Positions 1 through 56,184 are shown, numbered from the stretch's first letter. The stretch is DNA of 64,000 bases from IMGVR_UViG_3300035183_000733:1-64000, one strand, 5' to 3'. The notes: generated by a model not told the origin, from the letters alone. Numbers and translations are program-made.

Positions 1-139
1 GAGATCGGTACCGGGCAAGATCCTGTACAGGTCATTCTCGTGGGACGAGAACAGCGGACAGGGTGACTCTGACGAGTTTGGGGACATCCGTGTAGGCAGG
101 GTGGAATAGAGGTGGAATACAAAAAAAATACTAAAAGAA

Positions 140-1411
140 ATGAAAATTCAGAGGTTCAACGATTTCGTAAACGAGTACAAGAAGTTCGGAGAGTTCGAGG
201 GCGCACTGCGCTTCGGCGACTGGTCCGACTTCGCGAAGAGGCTGTCCGCCACCACGCAGAAGGGCTTCACCACCATAGAGGAGCTCCTCGACGGGCTCGG
301 CATGGACAAGCAGACATACGACAAGGTGAAGCGCAACATGATAGACAACTGGATCGACTCCGTGTCCAAGAGCCTGCTGCACGGCATATCCGGCGTGGAC
401 CTCGAGATACCAGAGAAGGGTGATGTGATATTCAAGGACGAGAAGGCACAGACGAGGTTCATAATAGTCGGCGGACCAGGCGCTGCCACGAGGAGCATCA
501 TGGGCGACGTCAACTCGACAAGGGGCCTCGGCCTCTGGGGCTACCCGAGCATAGTGGACGCCAAGAGCGGCAAGCCTGTGAGCAGGTTCATGATGGATGT
601 ACCGCTGTCGCTCGACTCGAAGAAGCAGGACGCGCTCGACGAGCTGCTACAGTACATCTGGGTCTACGTGTTCTACAACGACCATCTCAAGAAGAGCAAG
701 GGGCTGAAGCTCCCGAAGGTGCTCTACCGCGGTATACGCGTCGCCAACTTATTCGACACGCCAGAGATAAGGGCGGAGCTTGACAAAATCAAGAATTGGG
801 GGGTAGAAGGGGAGTTCAAGCGGGAGAAGAACACCAAGATGTGCACGGACGTCGTGATAAACTACATACTAAAGAACGGGTTATCTAAGATAGCCGACGG
901 CAACTACCTCAGCTTCACAGGAAGCAGGTCGATAGCCGAGTACTTCGCGCACTCGGAGGGCATAATACTCAAGGTGGACCCTAAGAAGGTCCGAGTGGTA
1001 ACCTCGCCGCTGACCGACGAGCAGTTTGCTGAGCCAAACCCGGCCACGGGCAAGAAGGAGCAGGAGTACATAGTCATGCTGCCCGACGACTACAAGTTCG
1101 AGAGGGACGACATCATCATAAGCAGCGAAGAGTACCTCGTTGGTGCCAACAGCCCGCTCGCGGTCGCGTTCTTCGGACACGACAACAAGAAGGCGGAGTA
1201 CGACTTCGAGCACGACGGCAAGAAGTACCACATCGAGACGTGGTACTCGTGGACGAGCAACACGTCAGGCAAGCTGGCATACAAGATCGACGGCAACTGG
1301 ATGGACGGAATAAAGCAGATAAAGAGGGACTACGGGTTCGACCCAACTCCGACCGAGAAGAACCTGGACAAGATAACTAACTTCCAGATAAAGCCGAAGA
1401 AATCCTTTTAA
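140..1411 (+). CDS. ADP-ribosyltransferase-like protein with capsid-targeting-like N-terminus
   Basis: LYRG...YLSFT...AEYF...EQEY R-S-E ART motifs; starts MKIQRFNDFVNE. Confidence 0.65.
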   Translation: MKIQRFNDFVNEYKKFGEFEGALRFGDWSDFAKRLSATTQKGFTTIEELLDGLGMDKQTYDKVKRNMIDNWIDSVSKSLLHGISGVDLEIPEKGDVIFKDEKAQTRFIIVGGPGAATRSIMGDVNSTRGLGLWGYPSIVDAKSGKPVSRFMMDVPLSLDSKKQDALDELLQYIWVYVFYNDHLKKSKGLKLPKVLYRGIRVANLFDTPEIRAELDKIKNWGVEGEFKREKNTKMCTDVVINYILKNGLSKIADGNYLSFTGSRSIAEYFAHSEGIILKVDPKKVRVVTSPLTDEQFAEPNPATGKKEQEYIVMLPDDYKFERDDIIISSEEYLVGANSPLAVAFFGHDNKKAEYDFEHDGKKYHIETWYSWTSNTSGKLAYKIDGNWMDGIKQIKRDYGFDPTPTEKNLDKITNFQIKPKKSF

Positions 1412-1431
1412 ACGAGGACGGTACAATTGAA

Positions 1432-2156
1432 ATGAAGAACATCCTCACGTACGAACTGTTCGAGAAGAAGAAATACCACCAGGAGAGTCTGCCGTGGAGA
1501 AGTTCTTCAGGGTCGATCCGAAGATCAAGAGCATACTCGACAGCGTATTGTTTCCCGCGCAAAACATAGTGAACAAGGGTAGTTCGAGAGTGCCGGCAGT
1601 CAAACACAGGATACACAACAACATGCTTGTCGACTATAAGTTCAAGGGCGGTCCCAACTTCGTGTCAGCAGAGAGATTCAATAAATTAGCGGAGGGCAAG
1701 ACCGTGTTGTACAGGGGCGTACAGAGCGAGAAATACAGGGACGACCTCGAGTACGATAATGCCAAGTTCAGAGGCTCCGTGAACGTGTACCAGGGCACTT
1801 GGGTAACGGACGACAAGGAGTATGCCGCTACATTTCACTACGACAAGGAACCGCTTAGGCTTCTCCTTAAAGACGACACGAAAATAATAGACGACGACGA
1901 GGCTAACAAACTATGGGGTGATTTTGCACAAGAGATGACCCGCGCAGAAAATGCCGGCCTCGAGATGGATGATGAGCGCGAGTCCAAGACAGTGCTGTAT
2001 CAGGCGAAATACTTAAAGGACAACCTCGACCCCACATTCCTCGCTATCATGAAAGGATACGACGCAGTGAGACTATACCAGAACCCGAATAAATCCAAGC
2101 AAGAAGTCACGGTCTATGTCGTATTCAACAGGAGCAAACTAATAATAAGCAGATGA
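1432..2156 (+). CDS. ART-like protein (apparent frameshift near 1490)
   Basis: ATG 1432 MKNILTYELFE; main frame 1494-2156 has LYRGV, GTWVT..YA, KGYDAV, VVFNRSKL. Confidence 0.5.
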
Positions 2157-2538
2157 AGAATTTGAAACTATACGAGGACTTCAGCGTTAACGAGGGCGTG
2201 ACCCACCGTAAGCTCGTGCTGTACCACGGCGTCAAGGATCCGAAGAACGTGACCTCACCAAGATCAAGACCAACTGGAACAACGACCACGCGGTGTCTAC
2301 TATGACCACGCCGAAGTCGGTCGCGAGGTTCTTCGGAAGAAACATAACAATACTGCGCATAGAGTTTGAGGGCAACGTGGGAACACCGGGCGACGCGCGT
2401 TCGTATGCCAGCACGCCTCAACAGTACACCAGGGACGTAGTCGACTCCGGCATAGACGCGGTAATGCTCGACGGAGAGGGCGCAAAGCGGGTGTTCATAT
2501 ACAACACTAAGGCGATAAAAAAAATAACAAAGATGTGA
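2153..2538 (+). CDS. small ART-like protein (frameshift near 2260)
   Basis: MKNLKLYEDFSVNE...VLYHG, continues in ORF 2293-2538. Confidence 0.45.
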
Positions 2539-2756
2539 TGAAGAATATCAAGACATTTGAAAACTTCATGGGTGACCCGCTCGAGATACTCGTGGGTGTA
2601 GCAAGGAAAATCGAGAAGAGTCTCGATAAGTCGAAGCAGATCAATAAGGCAGACCTACAAAAGATAGTGACGGACTCGGGAGAGGCCGCGATGTCGTCGA
2701 AGCAGATAGACATGCTGGCCGACATCCTCACGGACCGCGGATACGAAATAAAATGA
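2538..2756 (+). CDS. small hypothetical protein with capsid-targeting-like leader
   Basis: MKNIKTFENF; ATGA-coupled to neighbours. Confidence 0.7.
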   Translation: MKNIKTFENFMGDPLEILVGVARKIEKSLDKSKQINKADLQKIVTDSGEAAMSSKQIDMLADILTDRGYEIK

Positions 2757-3265
2757 GGCACCTGCAGACATACCAGATGTTCGAGTCGTGGAAGCCTAAG
2801 TTCGACGTAAAGACCATATTCGACGCCATACCATGGTACGACGCAAACCGTGATCTGTACCCGGGATACAGCGAGGAGGAGGACACCAACAAGGCGTCGG
2901 ACGAGTACTGGTTCGACACGAAGGAGAAGACAGAGCAGTACGCAGCGGATCTCATAGACCTGTTCGACTCACTGCCAGATCCGGTGCCCGTGTACAGGGC
3001 GATCAAGGCGAAGTCGGAAGCGGACATAAACCTGGAGATGCCGGGCGAGTCGTGAAGCTTCGACAGGGACTCCGCCGTGAACTTCGGTAGGCACAACGGG
3101 TCCAACTTCCTCCTGACTGTGAAGATAAATAAGGAGGACGTGAACTGGGCCGGAACGATAAAGGCGTACGTGCTCTTCTCGGGTTCGTACTCCGAGGACG
3201 ACGAGAACGAGCTGGTGATAGACGACCAAGATAAGCTGCAGGAAATAAAAAATAGAGAAACTAAG
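2753..3265 (+). CDS. ART-like protein interrupted by in-frame TGA (3053-3055)
   Basis: VYRAI...GES*SFDRDSAVNFG...ENELVI; frame stays open after the TGA. Confidence 0.5.
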
Positions 3266-4300
3266 GTGAAGCACCTCAGGTTATACGAGAACTACGTCAA
3301 CGAGAAGATGGGCGTGCCGGGAGGCCTGGAGAAGCAGGCGGACGGCGTGACCGTGCTCGTCGTGCAGGAGTACGTGGAGATGATCGGCAACGACACCGTA
3401 TACAGGCCGGTGTGGGCGACCGTGGGCGGCGACGGCTACCCGGATGGCGAGATATTTATCAAGCTCTACATAAACAAGAAGGACACGTCGAGGATATACG
3501 TCGAGGGCGGGATCAAGTCCCAGACGATGAAGATTGACAAGGACGGCTTCACCATAGACATGCAGGTGACCATGACAGGCGAGGCCACCGACATCTGGAA
3601 TGCCCGCAAGAGGGGATCGCTCGGCGACCCGTTCGTGCTGGACCCGGCGCTCGAGAAGGAGATAAGGCGCGTGGTCTACCACGAGCTGACCCACGTCTAC
3701 GAGGCATACGTCAGGAAGGCGACCGGCGCGGTGGAGCTGCACAACACGGAGACGATGGTCTACGACGCAATGGCCAAGGAGATACGGAAGCGGTTCGGGT
3801 ACAAGCTCGCGACCAAGCCGATAATGGACTTCATGTTCCTCGTGTACCTGGCGCAGGCGACGGAGGTCTCCGCGAGGGTGCCCGAGGCGTACTCGATAAT
3901 AAAGGACATACCGGACCCGCACGAGCGGGAGAAGATAATAAGGGCATCGTCCATGTGGAAGCAGGCCGAGGACATGATCAACTACAACGCGCAGGACTAC
4001 ATCGACAGGGCCAAGCACGACGTCACGCTCGAGATGTGGCCGGAGTTCAGGAGGCTGATGTCCGACAACATGGGCGCGCTCCTGAGCATGATCGACCGCA
4101 AGGCCAAGGACTACATGATCCTGTCCAGGAGGGACGGGCAGGAGGACAGGTTGAAGGCCAGGGAGCTGGTCACGCCGAGCATGCGCAAGGGCCTCGAAGC
4201 GTCGCAGGACATAGAGAGGTTCATGCACCAGTGGCAGGGGATAATAAACAGGGCCGGCAGGAAGCTGAGGGCCAAGCTGAGCAAGCTAACAACTATATGA
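3266..4300 (+). CDS. HEXXH zinc-metalloprotease-like virion cargo protein
   Basis: GTG 3266 gives (M)KHLRLYENYVNEKMGVP; VVYHELTHVYE; paralog of 37877-38986. Confidence 0.6.
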   Translation: MKHLRLYENYVNEKMGVPGGLEKQADGVTVLVVQEYVEMIGNDTVYRPVWATVGGDGYPDGEIFIKLYINKKDTSRIYVEGGIKSQTMKIDKDGFTIDMQVTMTGEATDIWNARKRGSLGDPFVLDPALEKEIRRVVYHELTHVYEAYVRKATGAVELHNTETMVYDAMAKEIRKRFGYKLATKPIMDFMFLVYLAQATEVSARVPEAYSIIKDIPDPHEREKIIRASSMWKQAEDMINYNAQDYIDRAKHDVTLEMWPEFRRLMSDNMGALLSMIDRKAKDYMILSRRDGQEDRLKARELVTPSMRKGLEASQDIERFMHQWQGIINRAGRKLRAKLSKLTTI

Positions 4301-4329
4301 GATAGGCCGCAGGAAATAAATAAACTGAA

Positions 4330-4759
4330 ATGAGACACATCAAACTATACGAGGACTTCAAGGAGCAGAAGACGTACTACACGACCTCGTCGCCCATGAG
4401 CATATCCGAGTTCGTGGAGACCGAGGTGGAGGATCGCGGCAACTACGAGCAGGACCAGGTCGACGCCTGGATCGAGCAGTACGGGATAACCGACGACTCC
4501 GAGCTGCTGTGGATCACGACTACGCCGTGGATGGCCGCGAGGTACCAGATGAACGCCGAGGACTGGCACGACGCCGAGAGGATATACAACGCCAACAAGA
4601 GTGACTACCCGGTTCAGACGGTCGACGCGTCGGAGGGGACCATAGTGGAGGAATCCGACGACGGCGACGACGGATACATAATGATACTGAAGAAATCACC
4701 TGAGGAAGTACAACGACTTCGCCGACGACGACGGATACATAATGATACTGAAGAAATGA
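4330..4759 (+). CDS. hypothetical cargo protein (fused to next gene via tandem duplication)
   Basis: MRHIKLYEDFKE; natural end DDGYIMILKK seen in the duplicated unit. Confidence 0.55.
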
Positions 4760-4791
4760 ACCACCTGAGGAAGTACAACGACTTCGCCGAC
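4666..4791 (+). repeat. 61/65-bp tandem duplication spanning a stop/start overlap
   Basis: GACGACGGATACATAATGATACTGAAGAAAT(GAAC)CACCTGAGGAAGTACAACGACTTCGCCGAC twice. Confidence 0.9.
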
Positions 4792-5580
4792 GACGGCGAC
4801 GAAATGAAGGTGCACGCTAAGAAGGTGCACGTCGCGCAGAAGGAGGACGAGTCCGTCAAGGCGTTCAACGACGCAGGACCCATGAAGATAGCGAACGGGT
4901 GGATGCTGTACCTCGACGAGGATAAGCAGATGCCGGTTGGTTCCGCCTTCATCAACATCAACACCAACGGCGCGCTCGCGCTGAGGGAGGTTGAGATAGC
5001 GAAGGGGATGCACAACAAGGGCATCGGTACCAAGTTCATGGAGCAACTGTGTAAGGCAGCGGACGACCATGGCTGGAAGATAGTGCTGACGCCGGACACA
5101 TACAAGGGCTCCGCAATGGGCAGGCTCAAGGAGTTCTACAAAAGGTTCGGGTTTGTTGACAACAAGGGGCGCAATAAGGACTGGTCCGTGCGGGAGACGA
5201 TGTACAGGGACGCCGGATCACTGGAGGAGAAGCTGGCGGTCGTGCCGCCGGACATAAGGAAGAAGCGCGTTGAGCAGAACTCGAAGATAGCCAAGGAGCT
5301 CGGACTGCGATTCGAGGGGGACTACGTCCAGCTGTACCACGGGACGAGCAAGGCAAACCTTAGCAAGATATACAAGTCCGGCAAGTTCAAAAGCGGAACG
5401 TGGTTCGCCACAGATCTGGAGACCGCGCAGAAGTACGCGAAGGCCAATCACAACACGAGCGCGGTAGACACCGTGTGGGTGTACATGGGCTCTCTGGTGT
5501 ACAACGGTTACTTCTCGAGTCAGGAGGAACTGTACTTTGGCAACAACAGATATTCGCCGAAGGACATAATATATAAGTAG
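4756..5580 (+). CDS. GNAT acetyltransferase + ART-like domain fusion
   Basis: MNHLRKYNDF leader; KGIGTKFMEQL...FYKRFGF (GNAT); LYHGT...GTWFATDLETAQKYA (ART-like). Confidence 0.65.
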   Translation: MNHLRKYNDFADDGDEMKVHAKKVHVAQKEDESVKAFNDAGPMKIANGWMLYLDEDKQMPVGSAFININTNGALALREVEIAKGMHNKGIGTKFMEQLCKAADDHGWKIVLTPDTYKGSAMGRLKEFYKRFGFVDNKGRNKDWSVRETMYRDAGSLEEKLAVVPPDIRKKRVEQNSKIAKELGLRFEGDYVQLYHGTSKANLSKIYKSGKFKSGTWFATDLETAQKYAKANHNTSAVDTVWVYMGSLVYNGYFSSQEELYFGNNRYSPKDIIYK

Positions 5581-5598
5581 TACTAAACAGATAAAACA

Positions 5599-5892
5599 AT
5601 GAGAGACGACAACTTTGAGGATTTTTTCGACGAGGAACTTAATCACGGGCGAGGTCACACTATGTGGCCAGAGTTCGACAAGCTCAAGACGCAGATATGC
5701 GTGTTCCACTTCCTGTGGGACGAGGGTTACATCAACGAGGGTGAGTTCAAGCCGGAGGTCACCATCGACGAGGTCAACGACGCGGTCGAGGCAGAGTTCG
5801 GCATCAAGAACTACTTCGACGAGGGTCTGGAGTCCGCTACGGATGACATGCTCAACGACATGAGGAACTTCGCCGAAGCGTACATGAGATAA
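5599..5892 (+). CDS. acidic hypothetical protein
   Basis: ORF with A-rich start context. Confidence 0.65.
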   Translation: MRDDNFEDFFDEELNHGRGHTMWPEFDKLKTQICVFHFLWDEGYINEGEFKPEVTIDEVNDAVEAEFGIKNYFDEGLESATDDMLNDMRNFAEAYMR

Positions 5893-5911
5893 AAATAAAG
5901 CGTAGCCACAG

Positions 5912-6704
5912 GTGGGAAACATTAAGAAATTCGGCGATTTCGTGAACGAGCCGAGGAGCCAACTCACGATACCCTTCAAGGAGAAGCGTTAGGGCAAGAC
6001 CGTGCATGGCCACCTCGAGGACGCCTTGATAGACCTGAAGGCAGGCAACCCCAAGAGCTACTTCTCGAAGTCTAACCCGGACGCCGAGAAAAGAGAAACA
6101 TTACGACAAGACGCTTGACAGGGTCATCGACGACCTGGACACGAGCACCGAGTATGTGTACAACTTCCTCGTGAACTACGACCCGAACGACGAGGACTAC
6201 GAGGACTATTACTACAATTGGACGCTCAAGGACGACGAGGACTACCTCGACGGCGACCACACGTTCGACCTGGTCAAGTACCTGGTCGAGAACACCCGGT
6301 ACGTCAAGGACATATTCACCGAGGAGGGATTCAAAGAATTCAAGAAATTATCGATGGGCAAGTTCGACGAGGACATTGCCGACATGCAGTACACGGTGAG
6401 GGACGCTTACGACAAGGACGAGGACGGCCTGATAGACTGCTGGAGGACCGTGTTGTACACCAAGGGCAAAGAGAAGGACATCTACCTGAACATAATGAAG
6501 CACGGAGGTGTAGGATTATACTGAGCATGGGACCAGGATAAGGCCGAAGCCTACTGGGGCGAGTCTGGCGGGCACTCGATAACGCTGCACGGGAAGGTGG
6601 CGGTCGAGGACGTCGACAAGATCCTCGTGATAGGATACCACGACGTCATAGAAAAGTACACGGAATTCGAGGAGCCTTACGTGGTAAAAGTTGGAAACGA
6701 TTAG
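5912..6704 (+). pseudogene. ART-like cargo gene broken by TAG (5990), a frameshift (~6090) and TGA (6522)
   Basis: GTG GNIKKFGDFVNE leader; GVGLY*AWDQDKAEAYWG motif continues to TAG 6702-6704. Confidence 0.45.
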
Positions 6705-6711
6705 ATATATA
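6704..6711 (+). promoter_or_regulatory. phage promoter motif GATATATA
   Basis: same octamer upstream of genes or tRNA operons at 19213, 20519, 23461, 30858, 35843, 42644, 45369, 46534, 50156, 50221, 52223 and on - strand at 37686, 63644. Confidence 0.65.
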
Positions 6712-6739
6712 AACTATACTTAAAAAATATAACACGGAT

Positions 6740-7336
6740 ATGGAAAAGATAACCCTGCAACAGGATGTGTCCAAGAAATTGAAGAACCTGAAAATGTTCG
6801 AGGACTTCAACGTCAACGAAGCCGACGTGGACGCAGTTGCTGCGCGCAAGCTGCGCGTGACAAAGGACTTCAAGGACCAGGTCACCGCTATGATGGAGAT
6901 GTCCAAGAAGTACCAGGCGATGGAGGAGGAGCTCAAGAAGCTCGGGAAGCTGCTCGGGAAGCAAGAGGGCGAGGTACAGAAGGTCCTCGAGAAGTACGGC
7001 GCAGTCTTCGTAGAGATAGACTCTGCGATTGGAAAGATCGCTATAGAGCTCAAGGACAAACCCGGCAAGACCACTAAATCGTACAAGGAGATCTCCGAGG
7101 CGCTCGAGGAGCTGCTGCCTAAGACCGAAGAGGTTGTGAAGCAGACCACGGCGATATACGACAAGTTCACCAAGCACAACCCGGACAAGAAGGAGCTCCA
7201 GTACAAGGTGCAGGAGGGACTCATGGATTGGATCAAGTCCGTCGGCGGATGGTTCAAGAGCGCAATCGACAAGCTCAAGGGGCTTCTCCCTTCGTTCGAG
7301 AAGAGCGCGGACAAACTCAAAAAGGCGGTAGCATGA
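6740..7336 (+). CDS. coiled-coil protein with internal capsid-targeting-like motif
   Basis: LKNLKMFEDFNVNE at residues 14-27; helical K/E-rich. Confidence 0.75.
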   Translation: MEKITLQQDVSKKLKNLKMFEDFNVNEADVDAVAARKLRVTKDFKDQVTAMMEMSKKYQAMEEELKKLGKLLGKQEGEVQKVLEKYGAVFVEIDSAIGKIAIELKDKPGKTTKSYKEISEALEELLPKTEEVVKQTTAIYDKFTKHNPDKKELQYKVQEGLMDWIKSVGGWFKSAIDKLKGLLPSFEKSADKLKKAVA

Positions 7337-7562
7337 AGGACCTAAAACTATTCGAAGAGCACAGCGACGCAATTTTATACAGGAGGAAGTAATGGGATGG
7401 ATGCCGACATTCGGGTACGTTAAGAGCGCTTTCAAGGACAACAAGGAGGCTTTTAAGTTCATGAAGAAAAAGAAGGGCTCGGTTAAAGTTGGGGAGCTCG
7501 GCAAGGCGGCCGAATCCATAAACGCACTGGTAGACGTAAACAAGCAGACTAAGCCGCTATGA
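7333..7562 (+). CDS. small cargo protein (frameshifted)
   Basis: MKDLKLFEE start; second frame runs to TGA 7562. Confidence 0.4.
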
Positions 7563-7627
7563 AGCACTTAAAACTATTTGAGTACTTCTCAATCAACGAA
7601 GATTACAAAAATCGCACTAAAGAATGA
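7559..7627 (+). CDS. 22-aa mini-ORF that is almost only the targeting leader
   Basis: MKHLKLFEYFSINEDYKNRTKE*. Confidence 0.5.
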   Translation: MKHLKLFEYFSINEDYKNRTKE

Positions 7628-7981
7628 AGCACCTGAAACTATACGAGCAGTTCTTAAACGAGAACAAGAAGGTAGCGGGAGATTCAGTAGCCGTAACCGT
7701 CTAACACTGGCACTATACAGGATCCGTCAACAGTAATGAAGCCCGCCTCATAGGGGAAGGCGAAGCAGCTGAAGATGGTTGTATTCGCAGAGGGCAGCTC
7801 GAACATAGACAACCCGGTGTACTTTGTGATGGACGAGGACGAGAACGAGGACAACTACAAGGTGGTAATCGACGAGAAGATGGACCTCTGGTACAACAAC
7901 CCGCATAAGGCCACAAAGGCCGAGATGGATGAGTACTACACGGAGTGGATTCCAAAAAAGGAAATGGTTGAGTACAAATGA
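7624..7981 (+). CDS. small cargo protein (frameshifted; joins ORF 7775-7981)
   Basis: MKHLKLYEQFLNE start; acidic C-terminal ORF. Confidence 0.45.
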
Positions 7982-8088
7982 AGCACCTTAAACTATTCGA
8001 GTTATAGAGATCAGATACTTGGCGACATGCTATAAAGAGTGTCCTTTAGGACCGGCGGGATCAATAGGTATTCGCTACACCTACCCGT

Positions 8089-8112
8089 GAAGACCCGCAT
8101 CGGCGGGTCTTC
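8089..8112. terminator. bidirectional intrinsic terminator
   Basis: GAAGACCCGC-ATCG-GCGGGTCTTC between convergent gene blocks. Confidence 0.7.
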
Positions 8113-8203
8113 TTGTTATATGCGCTGTATGACCTCTGTGACATCAAAGAATTCGCTACTCTTCTCACGAACTCCATACTGGTTTAGCGTAGTGCTTCTA
8201 AGG

Positions 8204-8767
8204 TCATGCGAAGTGTTTTATGTATTGACTTATCATCAGTGAGATCAGCATCATCTGCACCAGCATCAGTACGGAGAACGTGGCGACTGCGAGGAGAATA
8301 CCGCCCGTGGACTTTCTAACCGCAATAGCGACGTCCTCGGCGTCAATAGTGGACATCTGGAAGCCCTTGGCCAGGGCCTGCAGCTTGATGCCTATCACGG
8401 TCGCGCGCAGCGAGTGCCGCCTGCACAGGGCGTACGACAAGAACAGCAGCAGAATCGTCGGCCACAGCATTACGTCGGCCTGCCCATCCGGCATCTGCCC
8501 CTTGTCCTCCATTGCCAGCTTCATGGCGTGCATGTCCACGGCCCTTATGAGCTGCACCACGAATAGGAGCGCACCGAGCACAAGCATTATCAGGCAGTGT
8601 AACAGCGGGCGCCTCGGCGGCGGAACGATGCCGAACAGGAACTCTGTACGCAGGTCGTGCTGTTCCACGCTTACGGCTTCGTCTACGAATGCGCTCACCT
8701 CATCTTTGATGACCTGATCCTCCTCGGGGGTCAGCTGTTGCTTTTGTTCTTCGTTATTCTGGTTCAT
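8204..8767 (-). CDS. membrane protein
   Basis: three hydrophobic segments. Confidence 0.7.
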   Translation of the reverse strand: MNQNNEEQKQQLTPEEDQVIKDEVSAFVDEAVSVEQHDLRTEFLFGIVPPPRRPLLHCLIMLVLGALLFVVQLIRAVDMHAMKLAMEDKGQMPDGQADVMLWPTILLLFLSYALCRRHSLRATVIGIKLQALAKGFQMSTIDAEDVAIAVRKSTGGILLAVATFSVLMLVQMMLISLMISQYIKHFA

Positions 8768-11770: not shown

Positions 11771-14038
11771 ATGATAGAAAAATACACAGATATTGAACTT
11801 ACGGTAACACGCAACCCGATTCAGTACTACGCGTTCCTCGACATCGTTAACTCGGTAGACGAGGCGCAGAAGAAAAGCATCCAAGAAATACACTTCGAGA
11901 TGCTCAACGAAATTAAAGTCCTCAGAGACAAGAGTGAGAAGATTGATAACGCCGCATCGGACTTCATGCAGGAGTCGAGACAGAATCTCAAACTAAACAG
12001 GGGACTAATCTCCACGCTCGAGCAGGAGGACGATACCTACCAGAAGTTCCACAACGAGCACCTGAACTTCGTAGTCATGCTCGCGAATCTCGTCAAGAGC
12101 ATATCCAAGACTTACAAGGACGTTTACGAGGTAGCGAGTTCTCTCAACCCTCCATCCACTATGACCATAGGTGGAAAACGTAATATCACGAAGACATTCG
12201 ACAATCTCGAACAGCTCATGGGCATGCGCACCGAGATGGACATCAACGGCCCGGCAATTGAGCGTTGGGTGAAAGACCTCGCCATATTCTACACCAATTA
12301 CGACGTAGCTTCACAGCTCGCTGGCGGTTTGTACCAGGTAGTCGATAAGTACTACAAGATGCTTGTACACAGGCATACTAAGGAGGGGATAAAGATACAC
12401 AAGGACGCAATCATAACTGACGTAGCGTACCGCATATTCGAGAACATAGACTCTCATGGAGAGGTGGAGTCTGGCCGTGACGCCAAGACTGTGTCAGCGT
12501 ATACACTGCGCAAAGCTGAGATGCTTACTGCCGCAATAAAAGACGACATGGTATTCGGCTTTATCAGCGAACCGGACACGCTGTTCAAGTTCATCGAGGA
12601 CGCGCTCATACAGCTCGAGGGATTCATGAAAAGGATAACCGAGGTGATGAAGCCGCAGATCAAGCAGGTGTTCGAGAAGTTCACGATGGCCCGCGAGGCG
12701 CCGGACGTGAAGTCGACCCTGAAGAGGTCGCTCGCGGCAATTAAAGACACCAACCCGCTGAACGTGTCGTATGTGGAGTCTACCAAGATGAAAACGGAGA
12801 CCGAAGCGATGGCCGACGATCTCACGAACGAGACCATCGAGAAGATAGTCGACATGCTCACCAACGGCGCGCCGTTTCAGGAGATAGTGCAGTACGTACT
12901 CGGGCGCAAGGCAGAGCTGAAGAAGTTCTTCCACGAGGAGAACAGCTTCTACACATGCAAGATAAGCGAGGGCAACCCGTTCATGGGCCTCGCGCCAGGC
13001 GCGCTCGAGGTTGTGCCTGCTCAGAAGCCAAGAGGCGACATATCGAAGATCCTCGGAAGCGGGTTCGACGAGGTGCGCGAGTTCGCCGACTCGATAAAAT
13101 CCTCCGCCAAATGGCACGACCTGTTCATGGCAACGAGCCCGAGCGGAACCACAGACAAATCGAACATCCTGCTCATAGGACCGCAAGGTTGCGGCAAGAC
13201 CGAGGTGATGAGAGCCATCGGCGCGGCGAAAGATAGCATTGGCATATTCGCACAGGGTTCAGACTTCCAGACATGCTGGAAGGGCGAAGCAGAGAAGAAC
13301 CCTAAGAGATTGTTCGAGGCCGGAGTGAAACTCAACAAAGAGTCAGGCAAGCATGTGCACCTCCTCATCGACGAGATAGATGCAGTTTTAAACAGCGACC
13401 GCGACTTCAGCGGGTCCAACCTGACGCTCGAGTTTCAGATACTCATGGACGGCGTTGTGTCGTACCCTAACCTCAGCGTGTGGGGCGCGACGAACAACCC
13501 TGAGAGAATCCCGATTCCGATGATACGCCGCTTCAGTAAGGTGCTCATTGTGGGCGAGCTCAACCAGATACAGCGAGTGAGACTGCTCAAGGACTTCCTC
13601 GGCTACATGCCGCTCGGAGAAATAGAGGACGCGAAGTGGGAGGAGTGGGGTCGCCAACTCGAAGGAGCAACAGGCGACGTGATACGAAAAATCGCGGACT
13701 ACCTGTGGAGGAAGAAGATGAACCATTTCGTGCACACCAAGCCTACTGAGGCGGAAGCAGTCATGCAGTACCTCACGTCCAAGGGCAAGTTCGAGATAGA
13801 CAAGTTCGACCGGGCCGAGTTCAAGAAGGTGCTCGGCAAGCATTTCCACATAGGCTCGAAGGACATTACCATGTCGGTCGAAGAGAACCTAACCAACATG
13901 GCAGTGCGCTCGGAAATCAAAACCGCGATACAGACGTACGAGAGAGCAAGACAGCTACTCGAGAGCCTGAAAGGCTCTAAGATAGTGGAACCGAAAGAGG
14001 GGATGAAAGTCGCCGAGATGTCCGAGGAGAAGAAGTAG
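11771..14038 (+). CDS. AAA+ ATPase with long helical N-terminus
   Basis: GPQGCGKT, LLIDEID, WGATNNPE...MIRRF. Confidence 0.9.
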   Translation: MIEKYTDIELTVTRNPIQYYAFLDIVNSVDEAQKKSIQEIHFEMLNEIKVLRDKSEKIDNAASDFMQESRQNLKLNRGLISTLEQEDDTYQKFHNEHLNFVVMLANLVKSISKTYKDVYEVASSLNPPSTMTIGGKRNITKTFDNLEQLMGMRTEMDINGPAIERWVKDLAIFYTNYDVASQLAGGLYQVVDKYYKMLVHRHTKEGIKIHKDAIITDVAYRIFENIDSHGEVESGRDAKTVSAYTLRKAEMLTAAIKDDMVFGFISEPDTLFKFIEDALIQLEGFMKRITEVMKPQIKQVFEKFTMAREAPDVKSTLKRSLAAIKDTNPLNVSYVESTKMKTETEAMADDLTNETIEKIVDMLTNGAPFQEIVQYVLGRKAELKKFFHEENSFYTCKISEGNPFMGLAPGALEVVPAQKPRGDISKILGSGFDEVREFADSIKSSAKWHDLFMATSPSGTTDKSNILLIGPQGCGKTEVMRAIGAAKDSIGIFAQGSDFQTCWKGEAEKNPKRLFEAGVKLNKESGKHVHLLIDEIDAVLNSDRDFSGSNLTLEFQILMDGVVSYPNLSVWGATNNPERIPIPMIRRFSKVLIVGELNQIQRVRLLKDFLGYMPLGEIEDAKWEEWGRQLEGATGDVIRKIADYLWRKKMNHFVHTKPTEAEAVMQYLTSKGKFEIDKFDRAEFKKVLGKHFHIGSKDITMSVEENLTNMAVRSEIKTAIQTYERARQLLESLKGSKIVEPKEGMKVAEMSEEKK

Positions 14039-14124
14039 AAGAAGTAAGCACATAAAGACGAAAAGCACGTATTTCCAGTACGTGCTTTTTATTTTGTTAA
14101 AATCTCGTACCTTTACATCTACCA

Positions 14125-15336
14125 ATGAACCAGGGAAGGTACATAATCATAGGAGCCACTCACACCGGCATCCAGCTAACCAAAAAGCTGAAAGGCATCG
14201 CCATATCGGTAGTGCTCGCGGATACTCGCGAATGCCCTGACAGGGACGTCAAGAGCGTATACAAGCAGCTCGACATAATTGAGGATGCTGTTGTGCTCGG
14301 CGGGGATTGTTACTTCGTGACGTTCGACGAGGACAGCGCCAACGTGCGCATGTGCCTATCGATAAACAGGCAGCACAAAGACTCTCAAATATACACGATG
14401 CTCGCGCAGGAATCGCTCGGCGATAAGGTCGCCAAGTGCATGCCGAACTTCAGGTACATAAACCCGGCAAAACAAGCGGCAAAACAGTTCGTGAGGACGG
14501 CCGTGTCGAACCCCCAGCATACAGCGGAAACCAAGTTCAAGTGGCCAAAGTTGAAGTTGAAGTTGAAGCTCGATAGTCTCGTGAAGAAAGCGATAACGTT
14601 CATACTATCGGTCATGCTCGCCTCGACACTGTTCTTTCATTTCTATGACGGGCTGCTCTGGATAGATTCGTTCTACTTCACGGTGACCATGATGGCCACG
14701 GTTGGATTCGGCGACTACTCGCTCAAGGACCACTCTGGCCTCTCAAAAATAGTCGGCAGCCTCATCATGATGTTCGCCGTAACCGGTACGGCCATAATAT
14801 TCGCTCTCGTATCAGACAGCATCATCCGTAGACGGAAAGAGCTGTCCATGGGAAGAACGAGCTACAAGGGGCACGGGCACGTTCTCGTTGTCGGCGGCGG
14901 TTCGGTCGGATTCAATGTGATAAAACTATTGCTCGAGCAGGGTGAGAAACCGGTCATACTCGACAAGACGCTCGACGGCAGATACAGCCAACAGATAGTG
15001 GACCTCGGAGTTCCGTATCTGGTGGGTAACGCGAAGGACGAACAAAACTTATACAGGGCCGGACTCGGCCAATGCAAAGCCCTTATATGCGTTACGCAGG
15101 ACGACCTCACCAACCTCGAGGTCGGACTCGACGCGAGAACCGGCAGGCCGGACTTGCGCGTGGTGCTAAGGATATACGACCAGAATCTCGCGGTCAATCT
15201 CAGGGACGCTGCGGCTATAAAACACACGCTGTCTATGTCAAACATCGCGGCAGAGGAGTTCGTGGAAATGGTATCGACGCCACAGGCGCAGGCGATAATA
15301 CAGATGACAAAAAACTCGATAAAAACAACGATATGA
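14125..15336 (+). CDS. potassium channel with RCK/TrkA domains
   Basis: TM-FYFTVTMMATVGFGD-TM K+ filter; VVGGGSVG Rossmann RCK domain. Confidence 0.9.
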   Translation: MNQGRYIIIGATHTGIQLTKKLKGIAISVVLADTRECPDRDVKSVYKQLDIIEDAVVLGGDCYFVTFDEDSANVRMCLSINRQHKDSQIYTMLAQESLGDKVAKCMPNFRYINPAKQAAKQFVRTAVSNPQHTAETKFKWPKLKLKLKLDSLVKKAITFILSVMLASTLFFHFYDGLLWIDSFYFTVTMMATVGFGDYSLKDHSGLSKIVGSLIMMFAVTGTAIIFALVSDSIIRRRKELSMGRTSYKGHGHVLVVGGGSVGFNVIKLLLEQGEKPVILDKTLDGRYSQQIVDLGVPYLVGNAKDEQNLYRAGLGQCKALICVTQDDLTNLEVGLDARTGRPDLRVVLRIYDQNLAVNLRDAAAIKHTLSMSNIAAEEFVEMVSTPQAQAIIQMTKNSIKTTI

Positions 15337-19876: not shown

Positions 19877-19951
19877 GTCTCGATAGTATAGCGGCAATTA
19901 TACAACGGTCTCTAAAACCGATAGACATGGGTTCGAATCCCATTCGAGGCA
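19877..19951 (+). tRNA. amber suppressor tRNA(CUA)
   Basis: GTCTCGA/TCGAGGC acceptor; CGGT-CT-CTA-AA-ACCG. Confidence 0.9.
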
Positions 19952-20017
19952 CTTTTTTATAGTTTGGTGTCACAGGGAAAAAGAAGCAGAATTAAGAAAT
20001 AAATTAAAACAAAAGCC

Positions 20018-20608: not shown

Positions 20609-20830
20609 ATGGAGAAACCTGTACTCTATTCACTGCCGTGCGGATCTTGCGGCACACTCGAATCGCTCAAGGTAACGGAACTCGGTCACGTAATGGCCAG
20701 GTTCAGGATAGAGGAGGACGGGCACTCCAGGTGGATAAATTACGGCGTCGCGATGGTCGACGACTTGCTTGCGACTAAGAAGATCTTCAACACAAAGAGC
20801 TGGAATAATGAGGAAGTTACAAGGGTTTGA
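20609..20830 (+). CDS. small hypothetical protein
   Basis: CxxC motif. Confidence 0.6.
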   Translation: MEKPVLYSLPCGSCGTLESLKVTELGHVMARFRIEEDGHSRWINYGVAMVDDLLATKKIFNTKSWNNEEVTRV

Positions 20831-21053
20831 TAAGTTCGGTATAAACGAGGACGATGACCAGGAGCTTTTGGCGAAGCTGAGTCTTCCCGTCGAGGACAGG
20901 ACAGACGAACTGACCGGTATTGCCGAGGAAGTATCCAAGCGCGTCGATTACGAGTCCGACCTCGCGAGGTACATCTGCTACAAGATGCTCGCTGATTGCA
21001 ACGACCACGAGCTGGCGCTTAAATTCCTGCGCCTGTGCAACGAAGTAAAATGA
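20808..21053 (+). CDS. small protein with targeting-like leader
   Basis: MRKLQGFDKFGINE. Confidence 0.55.
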   Translation: MRKLQGFDKFGINEDDDQELLAKLSLPVEDRTDELTGIAEEVSKRVDYESDLARYICYKMLADCNDHELALKFLRLCNEVK

Positions 21054-21544
21054 GACATGTTAAGACATATAAGGTTTTCGAAGCCGAGTACGACGTATTT
21101 GCGAACAAGGCTGGCGAGGATTTTTGGGGCGATACTGGGGCCGGAATACTACCCATTTGCAGAGCAACTGGGAGAGTACTGGTTACCTACCGCTCTAAAT
21201 ACGTTAACGAACCTCACTCGTGGGGCGTCGTCGGCGGTAAGCTCGACGACGGCGAGACGGATGTTAAGGATGCTGCGAAGCGGGAGCTCCAGGAGGAACT
21301 GGGGTACGAAGGAGAATTCGAGCTCGTGCCGGCGTATGTATTCAAGAGTCAGGGCGGCGGGTTCGAGTACCACAACTTCATCGGGGTGGTGGAAGAGGAG
21401 TTCGAACCGACGTTAGACTGGGAAACGGAGAAGGCGAAGTGGGTGACGCTCGACGAGCTGATGAAACTTAGGCCGAAGCACTTCGGACTTGAGACGCTGA
21501 TCAAGAACAGCGGTGATATAATTAGGAAGTATGCAATTAAATAG
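21050..21544 (+). CDS. NUDIX hydrolase with targeting-like leader
   Basis: GGKLDDGETDVKDAAKRELQEELG Nudix box; MRHVKTYKVFE. Confidence 0.9.
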   Translation: MRHVKTYKVFEAEYDVFANKAGEDFWGDTGAGILPICRATGRVLVTYRSKYVNEPHSWGVVGGKLDDGETDVKDAAKRELQEELGYEGEFELVPAYVFKSQGGGFEYHNFIGVVEEEFEPTLDWETEKAKWVTLDELMKLRPKHFGLETLIKNSGDIIRKYAIK

Positions 21545-31960: not shown

Positions 31961-32045
31961 CATGGGAATTAAGAACAACAATTAGTAGATAGATGCTGTA
32001 ATCCTAAATACACACAAAAGACTGGTGGCGGATATATTTGGAAAT

Positions 32046-33587
32046 ATGAGCATAATAACTAAAAAAGATTCGGGGAGGGTACGCGTACGTTTCGCGCCCT
32101 CCCCTACGGGACCCCTGCACTTAGGAGGGATCAGGACCGCATTATACAACTACCTGTTTGCTAAGAAGCACGGCGGCGATTTCATACTTCGCATCGAAGA
32201 TACCGATGCGATGAGGTTCGTGCCAGGCGCCGAAGAGTATATCATCGAAGCGCTGAAGTGGTGCGGTATATCGCCCAACGAAGGCGTTGGATTTGGCGAT
32301 GGTCCGCATGCACCATACAGGCAGTCGGAGAGAAAATCCATTTACAAGGAATACGCTATTAAGCTCGTGGAGCTCGGCCATGCATACTATGCGTTTGATA
32401 CTGGGGTATCGCTCGAAGAGAGACGCGCTGTCAACAAGAATTTTATGTATAACGGGGTGACTCGCGAGTCGCTGAGAAATAGTTTGACGTTGTCTTCTGA
32501 TGAGGTGAAATCGCTATTAGACTCGGAGACGCCGTACGTTATTCGGTTTAAGATACCGCGCAACACCGAGGTCGTGGTTAACGACATAGTTCGTGGTGCA
32601 ATAAGGGTCAACACGAACACGCTCGACGACAAGGTATTGTTCAAGAGTGACGGCATGCCTACTTACCACCTGGCGAACATTGTGGATGACCATCTCATGG
32701 GGATCACCCATGTAATCCGAGGTGAGGAGTGGTTGCCGTCTGCCCCGCTGCACGTTCTTTTGTACGAGGCTCTCGAGTGGGACGCCCCAGAGTTCTGCCA
32801 CCTTGCGTTGATACTTGGGCCTAACGGCAAGATGAGCAAGCGCGACATGGATTCTCTCGGGTTCCCAGTGTACCCGCTTGATTGGACAGATCCCAACACG
32901 GGGGAAAAGGCATCCGGATACCGTGAGATGGGATTCCTACCGGAAGCGTTCATCAACATGCTTGCGTTCATCGGATGGAACCCCGGCAACGGCAAGGAGA
33001 TAATGGGTCTCGACGAGATGGCAGAGGTGTTCGACCTCAGGAAGGTTCAGAGAGCTGGTGCCAAGTTCGACCCAAAGAAGGCGGAGTGGTACAGCAAGGA
33101 GTACATGAGGGTCGCTGACGACGCCGTGCTCGTCGAGAAGTGGATACCGGATCTGTGGGATAACGTTGATAAAAGCATTCCGCTTTCTCGCGTTTCTTCC
33201 GAGTACCGCACGAAGGTCGTCCACTTACTGAAGGAGAAGGTGGCATATCTCGGAAAGTTTTGGGAGAACGGCAGTTACTTCTTTATTGATCCAACCGATA
33301 TGTCGGTGCTCGATGAGTTGGCCGCGTCTAATGATAAGGTAACTCCGTTTATATTAAGCATGATGTCTAAGCTGATCGCCGATGATGTATTCGATATGAC
33401 TACCACTAAGGCTTGCTTTGATTCTGCCATAGCAGAATCCGGCATTGAGCCGCGCGAGGCCGGTAAGGCATTGCGTGCTGCAGTTTGCGGCAACAAAGTG
33501 GGGCCGCCGATGTTCGACATATTGGTGGTGCTCGGAAAGAACACCACGTTGTCTCGTCTTAAGAACTGCGCAACTGCACGAAGCTAA
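32046..33587 (+). CDS. gltX: glutamyl-tRNA synthetase
   Basis: RFAPSPTGPLHLGG, LRIEDTD, HVIRGEEW, KMSKR. Confidence 0.95.
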   Translation: MSIITKKDSGRVRVRFAPSPTGPLHLGGIRTALYNYLFAKKHGGDFILRIEDTDAMRFVPGAEEYIIEALKWCGISPNEGVGFGDGPHAPYRQSERKSIYKEYAIKLVELGHAYYAFDTGVSLEERRAVNKNFMYNGVTRESLRNSLTLSSDEVKSLLDSETPYVIRFKIPRNTEVVVNDIVRGAIRVNTNTLDDKVLFKSDGMPTYHLANIVDDHLMGITHVIRGEEWLPSAPLHVLLYEALEWDAPEFCHLALILGPNGKMSKRDMDSLGFPVYPLDWTDPNTGEKASGYREMGFLPEAFINMLAFIGWNPGNGKEIMGLDEMAEVFDLRKVQRAGAKFDPKKAEWYSKEYMRVADDAVLVEKWIPDLWDNVDKSIPLSRVSSEYRTKVVHLLKEKVAYLGKFWENGSYFFIDPTDMSVLDELAASNDKVTPFILSMMSKLIADDVFDMTTTKACFDSAIAESGIEPREAGKALRAAVCGNKVGPPMFDILVVLGKNTTLSRLKNCATARS

Positions 33588-34924: not shown

Positions 34925-35809
34925 TTATTTAGTATCCTTGTTAAAATTCTCGAACATCTTCAGGTGCCTCATCTCGTACCTGTGTCCCTCGTGCGCGACC
35001 GGCTCCTTGAAATTTATCACACCGGCCTTCAGTAGGTCAGACCAGGATCCCGCGCTGTCTTCCGCGTCGTCGGTCTGAGGCATCACGCTCCGGTCTGGTG
35101 CGTCCTTAACCGGCTGAGAGGTCTTTTGCATGTTGCTTACGTTGCCCCAGATGTAATCGGCGGACTCGTCTTTGCCGCCATGCTCTATCTTTTTGTTGTC
35201 GTTCAGCACTTGCACCGTGGTGTCCGATATTTTTGAAATGACGTAAGTCTTGAGCTTGCGCTCGCTTATCTTTAGCAGGTTATCGCCCTCCACCCTTGCC
35301 ACTGGGAGATCCTTTAATTTGGCGACTATCGCCATCTGCACGGCCTTCAATACGGTCAGCGGATCCTCGTCAATAGTCATGTTCAGCGCGATCATAGTCG
35401 CATGGTCGTTCATGACGTAAACCCGTGACCACCTGTGGTGACCGTCTATGATATACTTGCCATTCAGTGTTATTATCGGAGCCTTGATGACTATCTCTTT
35501 GCCCTTGAGTATCTCTCCGAGCTGACCCGGGAATTTGCCCTCGAGCTGGAATTTGAGGGACTTGTCCACATCTATCTCGTTCTGCGTGGGGTGCAGTTTC
35601 CTCACCGGTATCTCTATCTTCGTGAACGATACCCTCTCGTCGCCGAGCTTCCCGTCGCGCCTCCCGGCCCTTATGGCGGCAACGATCTTATCGTCGTCGG
35701 CCATCTCGCCGAGCTCCTTTACGAACTCCTCGTAGCTGAGGTTTAGGAGGTTCTTAAGTTTGTGGAGCGCCTCCGGCTTGGCGGTGGCACCTGGTCCTTT
35801 TTCTGCCAT
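34925..35809 (-). CDS. ParB/Srx-like domain protein with C-terminal targeting-like motif
   Basis: LHPTQNEID...YIIDGHHRW; ends MRHLKMFENFNKDTK. Confidence 0.7.
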   Translation of the reverse strand: MAEKGPGATAKPEALHKLKNLLNLSYEEFVKELGEMADDDKIVAAIRAGRRDGKLGDERVSFTKIEIPVRKLHPTQNEIDVDKSLKFQLEGKFPGQLGEILKGKEIVIKAPIITLNGKYIIDGHHRWSRVYVMNDHATMIALNMTIDEDPLTVLKAVQMAIVAKLKDLPVARVEGDNLLKISERKLKTYVISKISDTTVQVLNDNKKIEHGGKDESADYIWGNVSNMQKTSQPVKDAPDRSVMPQTDDAEDSAGSWSDLLKAGVINFKEPVAHEGHRYEMRHLKMFENFNKDTK

Positions 35810-36105: not shown

Positions 36106-36429
36106 ATGAAGAACCTCAAGAAATACGAGGGCTTTGCCGGAGAGGATGACAACCTCAGCCACGGCAAGAACTACATGCTCATATCCAACCTCAAGAAGAT
36201 TAAGAGGATGGCATCGTACCTGCTCGACCGTGTTGATGATGAAGCTGACGTGGACGAGTGGGCGAAGGACCACATAGCCACATCGGCGGACGACATCGAG
36301 GAGGTGTACAATTTCATAAAGGGTAAGGAGGACGAGCCTGATGAACTGGTATCCGATTCGGAGAAACTGGATGACATTCCGGCCAGCATACCCGTGTCGA
36401 GCAGGCGAGGGAGACCGCGTATAAACTAA
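36106..36429 (+). CDS. small virion-type protein with targeting-like leader
   Basis: MKNLKKYEGFAGE; WAKDHIATSADDIEEVYNF. Confidence 0.7.
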   Translation: MKNLKKYEGFAGEDDNLSHGKNYMLISNLKKIKRMASYLLDRVDDEADVDEWAKDHIATSADDIEEVYNFIKGKEDEPDELVSDSEKLDDIPASIPVSSRRGRPRIN

Positions 36430-50130: not shown

Positions 50131-50250
50131 TTGGTCGTTTCCTCAATTTGGCCAGGATATATAAGAAAACAACGCCGGAATTCAAGTCAACGCCGGAAGC
50201 ACTTTCTCCTATCCGGACAGGATATATAAGAAAAATATCAATCCTTAAAA

Positions 50251-50730
50251 ATGAAAATATTCAGGTTCGAAGAGTTCTCGGTCAACGAGAAACTAACCGA
50301 CGCTGGTCAGGACTATGTGTCGAAAAAGATCGCGAAGCTCCGCGGTGAGGGTAAGGGCCCAAAGCAGGCGGCGGCCATAGCGTACAGCTACGCAAGGCGC
50401 AAGGGATACAAGGTACCCGCGAAGAAAAACGAGTCGGACAACCCGCTCAACGACGATAACTCTACGCTCGACATCAAGACGATGACGTCGCTCCAGTTCT
50501 ACAAACTGATAGACCTGCTCGAGGCGGACATCACCGCATACGGGCAGGAGGATCTCCAGTACTACGAGGAGATGACTGGGCTCGACACAGGGACCCTGCT
50601 CGACCTCTACACAACATACGGTTACAACCTGCATAAATACGCAGAGACCGAGAAGCTCAAGAGGGCGTATATGAGTCACGCGGGTAAGACCTGGGAGCAA
50701 ATTAAAAAAGAAGCCGAAGAGGCCGAGTAA
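50251..50730 (+). CDS. virion-type protein with targeting-like leader
   Basis: MKIFRFEEFSVNE; tandem GATATATA promoters at 50156 and 50221. Confidence 0.75.
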   Translation: MKIFRFEEFSVNEKLTDAGQDYVSKKIAKLRGEGKGPKQAAAIAYSYARRKGYKVPAKKNESDNPLNDDNSTLDIKTMTSLQFYKLIDLLEADITAYGQEDLQYYEEMTGLDTGTLLDLYTTYGYNLHKYAETEKLKRAYMSHAGKTWEQIKKEAEEAE

Positions 50731-55090: not shown

Positions 55091-55143
55091 AGGACGAAAC
55101 CTTATCTCATTTTAGAATACAAATATAATCAAAATACGTATCG

Positions 55144-55782: not shown

Positions 55783-56182
55783 ACCTCACCAGACCGCCGC
55801 TAACGATGTCCCTCACGAAGTAATCCTTGTACTTTGGACCGACCTCGAACGCGTCGCCGGCATCGCTCATGAACGCGTACGATCCCATGTTTGGCTTGGT
55901 CTCGTTTTCGAACCTCGCGTCCATCTCGTAAAGCACATAAAGCTCCATGTTCATCTCACTTGCTATCTCGCGCAAAGCGACCTCGTCCTTCGTGATGTCA
56001 AGATCCCCATACCACACCTTCTCGAACTCCTTGAGTCCGCGCAGTGTCATAACGACGTTTGCGTTGAATATGACTGCGTTCTTTGGGTTCCTCTCCCTGT
56101 AACCTGATTTAGACATCGATATGATGCGCCCGGAGGCTCCGAGCTTCTCGATGAATAGGCTTCTGATTTTACCCTCGTCCAT
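55775..56182 (-). CDS. hypothetical protein
   Basis: MDEGKIRSLF...; 135 aa. Confidence 0.65.
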   Translation of the reverse strand: MDEGKIRSLFIEKLGASGRIISMSKSGYRERNPKNAVIFNANVVMTLRGLKEFEKVWYGDLDITKDEVALREIASEMNMELYVLYEMDARFENETKPNMGSYAFMSDAGDAFEVGPKYKDYFVRDIVSGGLVRSN

Positions 56183-56184
56183 TA

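Follow-up and report, generated by a model that had tools for sequence, protein, structure and literature searches.

The first 64,000 nucleotides of IMGVR_UViG_3300035183_000733, here called the window, carry at 140-8010 an array of genes whose products begin with variants of one short N-terminal leader. The record is that of an uncultured huge phage (373,759 bp, 50% GC, 100% complete according to CheckV in IMG/VR, with 49 tRNA genes genome-wide). Positions marked G000 are whole-genome coordinates of this record, of which the window is positions 1-64000; all others are those of the window. We favour, with moderate confidence, the reading that the leader is a portable capsid-targeting and processing propeptide like the capsid-targeting sequence (CTS) of phage T4, expanded into a tag that is used throughout a clade, and that the array is a hypervariable hot spot. 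The leader probably loads the tagged enzymes into the capsid for injection, packaging, cleavage and injection being steps that we infer.

The leader is about 10-14 residues long and follows the consensus M-[KR]-x-[LIV]-[KR]-x-[FY]-[EN]-x-[FY], often continued by (V/I/L)-N-E. The array has 15 starts of this type by our count; on the + strand they lie at 140, 1432, 2153, 2538, 2753, 3266 (GTG), 4330, 4756, 5912 (GTG), 6779 (TTG), 7333, 7559, 7624 and 7978, the one at 6779 lying 13 codons inside an open reading frame (ORF) that begins at 6740; besides these, 4694 marks a leader fragment that arose by duplication, and the leader at 5599 is weak. A preliminary description of the window had counted about 14 such starts in 8 kb, with six more outside the array at 20808, 21050, 36106, 37877, 45399 and 50251, and all of these are borne out. 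The tag is, however, not special to the array on which that description centred: a position matrix yields about 45 plausible leader ORFs in the whole 374-kb genome, and many other huge phages carry the tag. Matched directly after a start codon, the pattern [KRN]x[ILV][KRQ]x[FY]xx[FYW] occurs 26 times in the 374-kb genome; reversing the sequence leaves three matches, ten Markov resamples give 0-3 each, and a 30-nt degenerate leader pattern gives 21 matches in this genome versus two for its control. Position 7 is F or Y in all 32 strong leaders, and position 10 is F, Y or W in 28 of them. These conserved residue classes are written with many codons (eight different ones for L, I or V at position 4, with positions 5 and 7 variable too, the latter as TAC, TTT or TTC), and selection on the leader is therefore at the level of the peptide and not of the DNA.

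Codon usage also bears on an alternative in which conservation serves the nucleic acid, either as a translation-initiation or mRNA element (in a host without Shine-Dalgarno) or as a mere recombination site, with a peptide that has no role. Breakpoints, duplications and remnants are indeed located at leaders, and some genes preceded by the late-promoter-like motif described below have their ATG 11 nt after it, suggesting very short 5' leaders. Such an element is nevertheless difficult to reconcile with residue classes encoded by both synonymous and non-synonymous codons, with a motif that is kept across genomes from 36% to 50% GC, or with leaders that lie 13-33 residues inside some ORFs. Recombination at leaders is also compatible with a function of the peptide, as at the internal protein (IP) loci of T-even phages, which hold diverse proteins having just a conserved CTS in common (PMC3012670). 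We regard a purely nucleic-acid role as very improbable.

Published mutagenesis of the T4 CTS assigns targeting to residues 4 and 7, while residues 8 and 10 are those needed for processing (PMC9026906); IPII and IPIII of T4 start MKTYQEFIAE/A, and IPI starts MKTFKEF...ITE/A (AF158101). The leaders described here end [FY]-[EN]-x-[FY]-(x)-[VIL]-N-E, for example YENYVNE, FNDFVNE or YEQFLNE, and therefore carry an aromatic pair plus aliphatic-x-Glu, as does the T4 CTS. Their positions 7 and 10 align with Y4 and F7 of MKTYQEFIAE, a resemblance and not proven homology. As in IPI, IPII, IPIII and Alt of T4, a short N-terminal propeptide is common to otherwise unrelated proteins: the cargos are mutually unrelated by BLAST except for the leader, and their types comprise ADP-ribosyltransferase (ART), GNAT, Nudix, HEXXH, hydrolase and topoisomerase IB. 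The likeness to T4 extends to a gp21-type protease, a gp23-type capsid protein, cargo that includes an ART, and loci that vary between relatives with only the leader conserved. Unlike the T4 sequence, the leader has three to four extra N-terminal residues (MKxLK...) and a preferred site, (V/I/L)NE, that is often absent; about 45 genes are tagged here, where T4 has a handful, protease and scaffold form one fusion protein, and the targeting function is a prediction. T4 itself lacks the exact leader pattern (no matches above control). In the AF2 model of the first array product, protein A, leader residues 1-12 are disordered (pLDDT <50).

Of 47 leader ORFs, 14 have a [VILM]NE that ends at residues 12-14, compared with an expectation of about 0.2 (approximately 80-fold over background). 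In the 504-aa capsid protein [IL]NE is found three times and no more, at residues 6, 19 and 43, and 11 of 13 capsid proteins of the clade keep an [LIM]NE close to residue 43. Directly upstream of the gp23-like capsid gene (G000 109686-111200, minus strand) lies the gene for a 662-aa protein (G000 111219-113207, minus strand), which has a Peptidase_S77/phrog_207 protease domain as its N-terminus, followed by about 12 tandem 14-residue repeats (YSEYLAENLDKNIS) and a C-terminal part. When searched for with this phage's own protein, the protease-scaffold fusion is present in all 12 leader-rich relatives examined; the Pfam S77 model alone detected the protease in 10 of 32 leader-rich contigs. Judging by these sites, the prohead protease may prefer (V/I/L/M)NE, the tripeptide that closes many leaders. 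In the Tenacibaculum phage PTm1 the protease-scaffold fusion is annotated likewise.

In the mechanism that we propose, leader-tagged proteins would be made late in infection. The amphipathic leader, with its aromatics three apart, would bind the scaffolding core, which in this phage is formed by the C-terminal, repeat-rich half of the fusion protein, and by this binding the cargo would become enclosed in the prohead. Leaders ending (V/I/L)-x-E, mostly (V/I/L)NE, would then be cut off by the gp21-type prohead protease, the same enzyme that is predicted to cut the propeptide of the capsid protein. The freed enzymes would be retained inside the capsid until injection and would pass into the host together with the phage DNA, delivering ARTs, a GNAT, a Nudix, the HEXXH protein, an alpha/beta hydrolase and a topoisomerase IB.

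Several observations weigh against this proposal. About one third of the leaders have a (V/I/L)NE site and the remaining two thirds do not, and most leaders of one relative (G013) are without it, so that cleavage cannot be general. The comparison with the T4 CTS made in the preliminary description holds for the targeting and processing positions, the protease-scaffold protein and the capsid [IL]NE, and falls short in the share of leaders that carry the site. The likeness spans about seven residues, too few to prove homology, and the capsid [LIM]NE is not aligned with the known cleavage site of T4 gp23. The tag is found on about 10% of genes, which is high for head cargo. The late motif is only modestly enriched upstream of leader genes (it precedes 8 of 47 leader ORFs and 27 of the 390 other genes; odds ratio 2.8, p = 0.04), and the cassettes at 140-5580 are without a late motif of their own. 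The locus was found in no RNA run, and in the cultured phages PTm1 and pT24, plus Lak-A1, leader-pattern matches do not rise above control.

The scarcity of NE sites and the large share of tagged genes would suit a true peptide tag with another destination: it might dock onto a phage chaperone or AAA+ unfoldase, feed a degradation or timing system, or direct proteins to a different virion part (for instance tail or baseplate) or to a place within the cell. Peptide-level selection and portability fit such a tag too, the window encodes a 755-aa AAA protein (11771-14038), and some leader genes adjoin baseplate or tail genes. A destination outside the capsid leaves unexplained why the leader agrees with the T4 CTS at the residues for targeting and also at those for processing, why (V/I/L)NE is sharply enriched at residues 12-14 when the same tripeptide is confined to the propeptide of the capsid protein, and why the E/KMGVP junction of the F family, described below, is invariant. 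We consider this alternative unlikely, and retain capsid targeting as the preferred reading.

Among the cargos, protein A (cassette A, intact, 140-1411, 423 aa) carries the leader MKIQRFNDFVNE and then what, judged by invariant motifs and modelled fold, is an R-S-ExE ADP-ribosyltransferase. Y196-R197-G198, S258-F259, E307 and E309 are invariant across 27 homologues, and when the R-S-E signature was examined in these sequences, R197, S258-F259-T260 and E307-x-E309 proved invariant or nearly so. The AF2 model has a pLDDT of 87, and an all-against-all aligner places ARTs at the top of the structural matches over residues 190-336, with modest Z values of 4-6; Foldseek gave no significant match of the model in PDB. 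Near homologues of A open with a leader ending VNE, INE, LLE, LNE or ILE. Distant homologues, including a Bacillus chromosomal protein, have no leader and begin at the domain itself. A single seeming exception turned out to have a mis-called start. The cargo of cassette B (1494-2156, 220 aa) is predicted to have an ART fold: its AF2 model (pLDDT 87) has ART folds as all of its top 27 structural matches, including diphtheria/exotoxin-A-type and PARP domains. The fold also matches 9k3a_B, a chain of the pre-ejectosome (ejection complex) of cyanophage A4. YYRG and QGTW are near-invariant in the B family, and hhalign of this family against cassette G2 found nothing beyond a short GTWxTxD motif.

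Cassette G2 (4756-5580) has the leader MNHLRKYNDF followed by a GNAT acetyltransferase and an ART-PolyVal-like domain, and matches phrog_10691, a 3925-position family. Its GNAT domain (4759-5577) scores above the Pfam cut-offs (PF13508 Acetyltransf_7, 29.0 bits versus 27; PF00583, 26.2 versus 20.7), and ART-PolyVal reaches 25.3 bits, below the cut-off of 31.2. In cassettes C and E the likeness to ARTs comes from short motifs alone. The preliminary description had listed about five ARTs, of which three are verified (A by motifs and fold, B by fold, and G2 with a sub-threshold ART-PolyVal match), those starting at 2153 and 2753 being ART-like by short motifs only; it was right about the GNAT, and also about a Nudix, which lies outside the array at 21050-21544 (+), behind the leader MRHVKTYKVFEAE (Pfam NUDIX, E = 2.6e-20).

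Cassette F (3266-4300) starts with GTG and carries the leader KHLRLYENYVNE, then KMGVP... Its product is a putative zincin-like metallopeptidase, an assignment resting on the HEXXH motif alone. H138-E139-H142-E145 are invariant across six homologues (alignment A1), which upholds the motif of the HEXXH protease that had been proposed; no significant Pfam or PDB sequence match accompanies it, and Pfam gives weak peptidase hints. The leader is kept in five homologues at 24-45% identity, with E12-K13-M14-G15-P17 invariant (the E/KMGVP junction). By tblastn, protein F matched two uncultured huge phages and no others. A paralogue of 369 aa at 37877-38986 (+) likewise begins with a leader, MNRIKRYKDFGQVDE, and then KMGVP. 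For the cassette pieces E1 and I3, no related loci were found in IMG/VR.

The repertoire invites comparison with polyvalent proteins, whose domains include ART, MPTase-like HEXXH, GNAT and Nudix and which are predicted to be packaged and injected (PMC5512222; PMC7824862). Like the polyvalent proteins of Iyer et al. 2017 (PMC5512222), the tagged genes encode ART-PolyVal, HEXXH MPTase-like, GNAT and Nudix effectors and have late or structural genes as neighbours, and in both cases delivery along with the DNA is predicted. They differ in being mostly separate genes, each with its own leader, and not one giant polypeptide: most cassettes are single-domain, whereas polyvalent proteins are recognised by 2-15 effector domains per polypeptide. 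The ORF at 4330-5580 alone combines an unknown domain, a GNAT and an ART, and this G fusion and the read-on from E to F resemble small polyvalent fusions. A second comparison is with the ejection and inner-body proteins of the giant phages phiKZ, 201phi2-1 and SPN3US. There, a gp21-like protease cleaves many of the head proteins after Glu, and paralogues with identical N-termini have been suggested to be CTS-like (PMC5694885). The propeptides of these phages differ from the leader in being mostly at least 100 aa long, with S/A/G-x-E sites and another capsid lineage, and they include no single portable 10-residue tag.

We tentatively raise, as a broader possibility that at present looks somewhat doubtful, that the huge-phage clade with the gp23-like capsid and the protease-scaffold fusion, including LR756500.1, has made of the CTS principle a general address label on about 10% of genes, loading into the capsid, for delivery, dozens of enzymes, several ARTs and a type IB topoisomerase among them, and that the in-frame fusions with internal leaders (E-F, G1-G2, J) are mini-polyproteins cut inside the head. 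If so, such mini-polyproteins would bridge, in evolution, tagged single effectors and giant polyvalent proteins. Should the tag work in the way we propose, the injected proteins of a large clade of uncultured phages could be predicted by a simple sequence rule. The leader would then point to candidate host-takeover and anti-defence enzymes, recombination at the leader would explain how such loci diversify, and a second, longer capsid-targeting tag would be available for loading foreign proteins into large capsids.

Approximately half of the array cassettes are broken or are bare leader remnants, a state that the preliminary description had overlooked. The leader ORF of cassette B (1432-1569, 45 aa) is separated by a frameshift from its own cargo; in the homologues P0039-P0049, leader and cargo form a single ORF of 234-263 aa. 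Cassette C (2153-2538) is broken by a frame-breaking deletion, the leader MKNLKLYEDFSVNE and N-terminal part occupying 2153-2305 and the rest lying in another frame at 2212-2538, and a soil relative (run X3) has 25 extra bases behind position 2250. Cassette D (2535-2756) encodes a small protein of 72-73 aa with the leader MKNIKTFENF, which has no NE site. In cassette E (2753-3265, leader MRHLQTYQMFES) there is an in-frame TGA at 3053-3055, and the second part runs without a stop, in frame, into F. Cassette G1 (4330-4755), with the leader MRHIKLYEDFKE and an unknown domain of about 120 aa, is fused in frame to G2. The junction of the two bears a tandem duplication (4659-4798, 61/65-nt spacing) of the end of G1 plus the leader of G2, which removes the stop/start overlap and has thus fused them; read contigs bridge the duplication at elevated depth.

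Further along the + strand, a late-promoter-like motif (5568-5577) precedes ORF H (5599-5892, 97 aa, acidic, with a degenerate leader). Cassette I (5912-6704, GTG start, leader GNIKKFGDFVNE) has three breaks: two in-frame stops, TAG at 5990-5992 and TGA at 6522-6524, and between them, within 6039-6115, a frameshift. At the TGA a wastewater relative (run X5) has a sense codon. After a second late-promoter-like motif (6704-6712), cassette J (6740-7336) encodes a coiled coil in which the leader KNLKMFEDFNVNE starts 13 residues in; a relative has CTC where TTG precedes the leader here. The decayed tail of the array (7333-8007) holds leader remnants at 7333-7392, 7559-7627 and 7978-8007, a leader plus 26-aa ORF at 7624-7704, an acidic ORF, L, at 7775-7981, and the small, conserved and leaderless gene K at 7392-7562, with homologues in the Logan contig L125 and in the close relative G008. 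A terminator-like hairpin at 8089-8112, the sole + strand example in 1-8400, ends the transcription unit of the array.

With frameshifts in B, C and I, three in-frame stops and four bare leader remnants, the array might be thought mostly junk, that is, a decaying paralogue cluster or an assembly artefact with no current function, and an A7/A8 homopolymer difference in the terminal overlap of the record (see below) could be read in the same way. The sequence is present at about 30x depth in two microbial-mat metagenome runs, and Logan contigs of these source runs show 0 differences over 1400-4694 and 4766-7390; an independent assembly of the source reads thus reproduces every break, so that the breaks are real and assembly error is excluded as their cause. 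Six of the genes (A, D, F, G2, J and K) are intact with conserved homologues, the cargos are too unrelated to be one paralogue family, and the tag extends across the clade, with 3-50 matches per contig to the 30-nt pattern in 32 large contigs and about 0 in the control. We give the junk explanation scarcely any credence.

An alternative genetic code was also considered and rejected, coding density being 0.830 under code 11, 0.839 with TAG as sense and 0.796 with TGA as sense, with gene calls not improved. Stops with coding sequence on both sides number six candidates genome-wide, three of them within the 8-kb array, and together with the gene calls this argues for local decay and not recoding. 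The only in-frame TAG flanked by coding sequence is that at 5990. The window has two tRNA genes with a CUA anticodon, of amber-suppressor type (19877-19952 and 42187-42258), and TAG, which ends 38 of 423 called genes, is the least used stop codon, yet nothing genome-wide points to its being read through. ARAGORN calls a tRNA with a four-base anticodon (ttgc) at G000 212306-212380, minus strand; a tie of this tRNA to the frameshifts of the array was rejected, as no matching in-frame quadruplet occurs at the sites.

The array is a hypervariable locus in a late operon, and several cassettes are decaying in this copy. Similarity to the soil relative starts inside leaders. In G008, whose capsid protein is 78% identical, the syntenic array is short, has other cargo and lacks A. 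The notion of interchangeable cassettes put forward in the preliminary description gains from leaders that are kept at 24-45% identity and from the differing cargo of relatives, and needs qualifying in that many cassettes here are broken by frameshifts, stops or deletion. The conserved leader may double as recombination homology, which could give rise to cassette swaps, junction duplications, in-frame fusions and leader remnants. At about 3.9-6.3 kb of L157 (G008 354000-372000), an RRM-like small ORF and about 2.5 kb separate the head-closure gene from the short leader array, and no clear + strand coding sequence is present in that 2.5 kb.

The genomic context of the leader genes is that of late genes. 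The motif GATATATAA(A/G) occurs at 69 genome sites, is strongly over-represented, and lies within 60 nt upstream of called genes at 43 of them, 11 nt or about 25-35 nt before start codons (window examples at 5568, 6704, 45369 and 50221). Because the genes for the protease-scaffold, the portal, the tail sheath, the baseplate wedge and the tail fibre all have it upstream, it is probably the late promoter. It stands directly before the leader genes at 45399 and 50251, before those at G000 102721, 103198, 141625, 194944, 337547, 348871 and 352614, and in the array at 5568 and 6704. Upstream of the array, on the same strand, a gene pair opens with the motif; its first product has about 160 aa, and its second, of 587 aa, is head-closure-like (phrog_679). 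The unit runs from G000 371273 to 8112, and this synteny of head closure and array is kept in L125 and in G008. A similar motif, AATATATA, is found before leader genes in AT-rich IMG/VR relatives.

In GenBank the capsid protein comes closest to those of uncultured huge phages (45% identity to LR756500.1), of Lak megaphages and of Tenacibaculum jumbo phages. LR756500.1 has 15 leader-pattern matches, and a homologous capsid protein is encoded by seven of the eight complete leader-rich contigs. The exact DNA pattern for MKHLK[LF][FY]E was found in >119 IMG/VR stretches, almost all at ORF starts. Megablast of the array against GenBank phages gave no match, the leader was not found in any cultured relative examined, and no earlier description of the leader itself was found in the literature searched.

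Leader genes elsewhere in the window lie on the + strand and encode an 81-aa protein with MRKLQGFDKFGINE (20808-21053), adjoining the Nudix gene, a 107-aa protein with MKNLKKYEGF (36106-36429), a 301-aa protein with MKLKRFNTLNE (45370-46304 including the late-promoter-like motif before it) and a 159-aa protein with MKIFRFEEFSVNE (50222-50730, again with the motif). On the minus strand, the leader remnant MRHLKMFENFNKDTK (34925-34972) forms the in-frame last 15 codons of a 329-aa ORF, and a bare leader remnant at G000 136860(-) lies within a 52-nt repeat. Leader-bearing proteins in the rest of the genome include ART-PolyVal above cut-off, a UPF0227 hydrolase and a type IB topoisomerase. The last is encoded at G000 352614-353663 (+), is of eukaryotic type (Pfam Topoisom_I, E = 1e-18), has the leader MKHIKSFDDHVSE and starts 11 nt after a late motif; it is a candidate virion-packaged topoisomerase.

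The auxiliary genes of the window, at 11771-15336, 32025-33587 and 53663-57675, encode an AAA ATPase, a TrkA-type K+ channel, a Glu/Gln-tRNA synthetase, a glutamate-synthase domain protein and an RlaP nucleotidyltransferase, and the window has 23 tRNA genes, several of them 85-91 nt long. The ends of the record overlap by about 166 nt (G000 373594-373759 versus window 1-166) with the one A7/A8 difference mentioned above, and at this overlap an extra leader-like start, MKHIKRR..., lies immediately 5' of the array.

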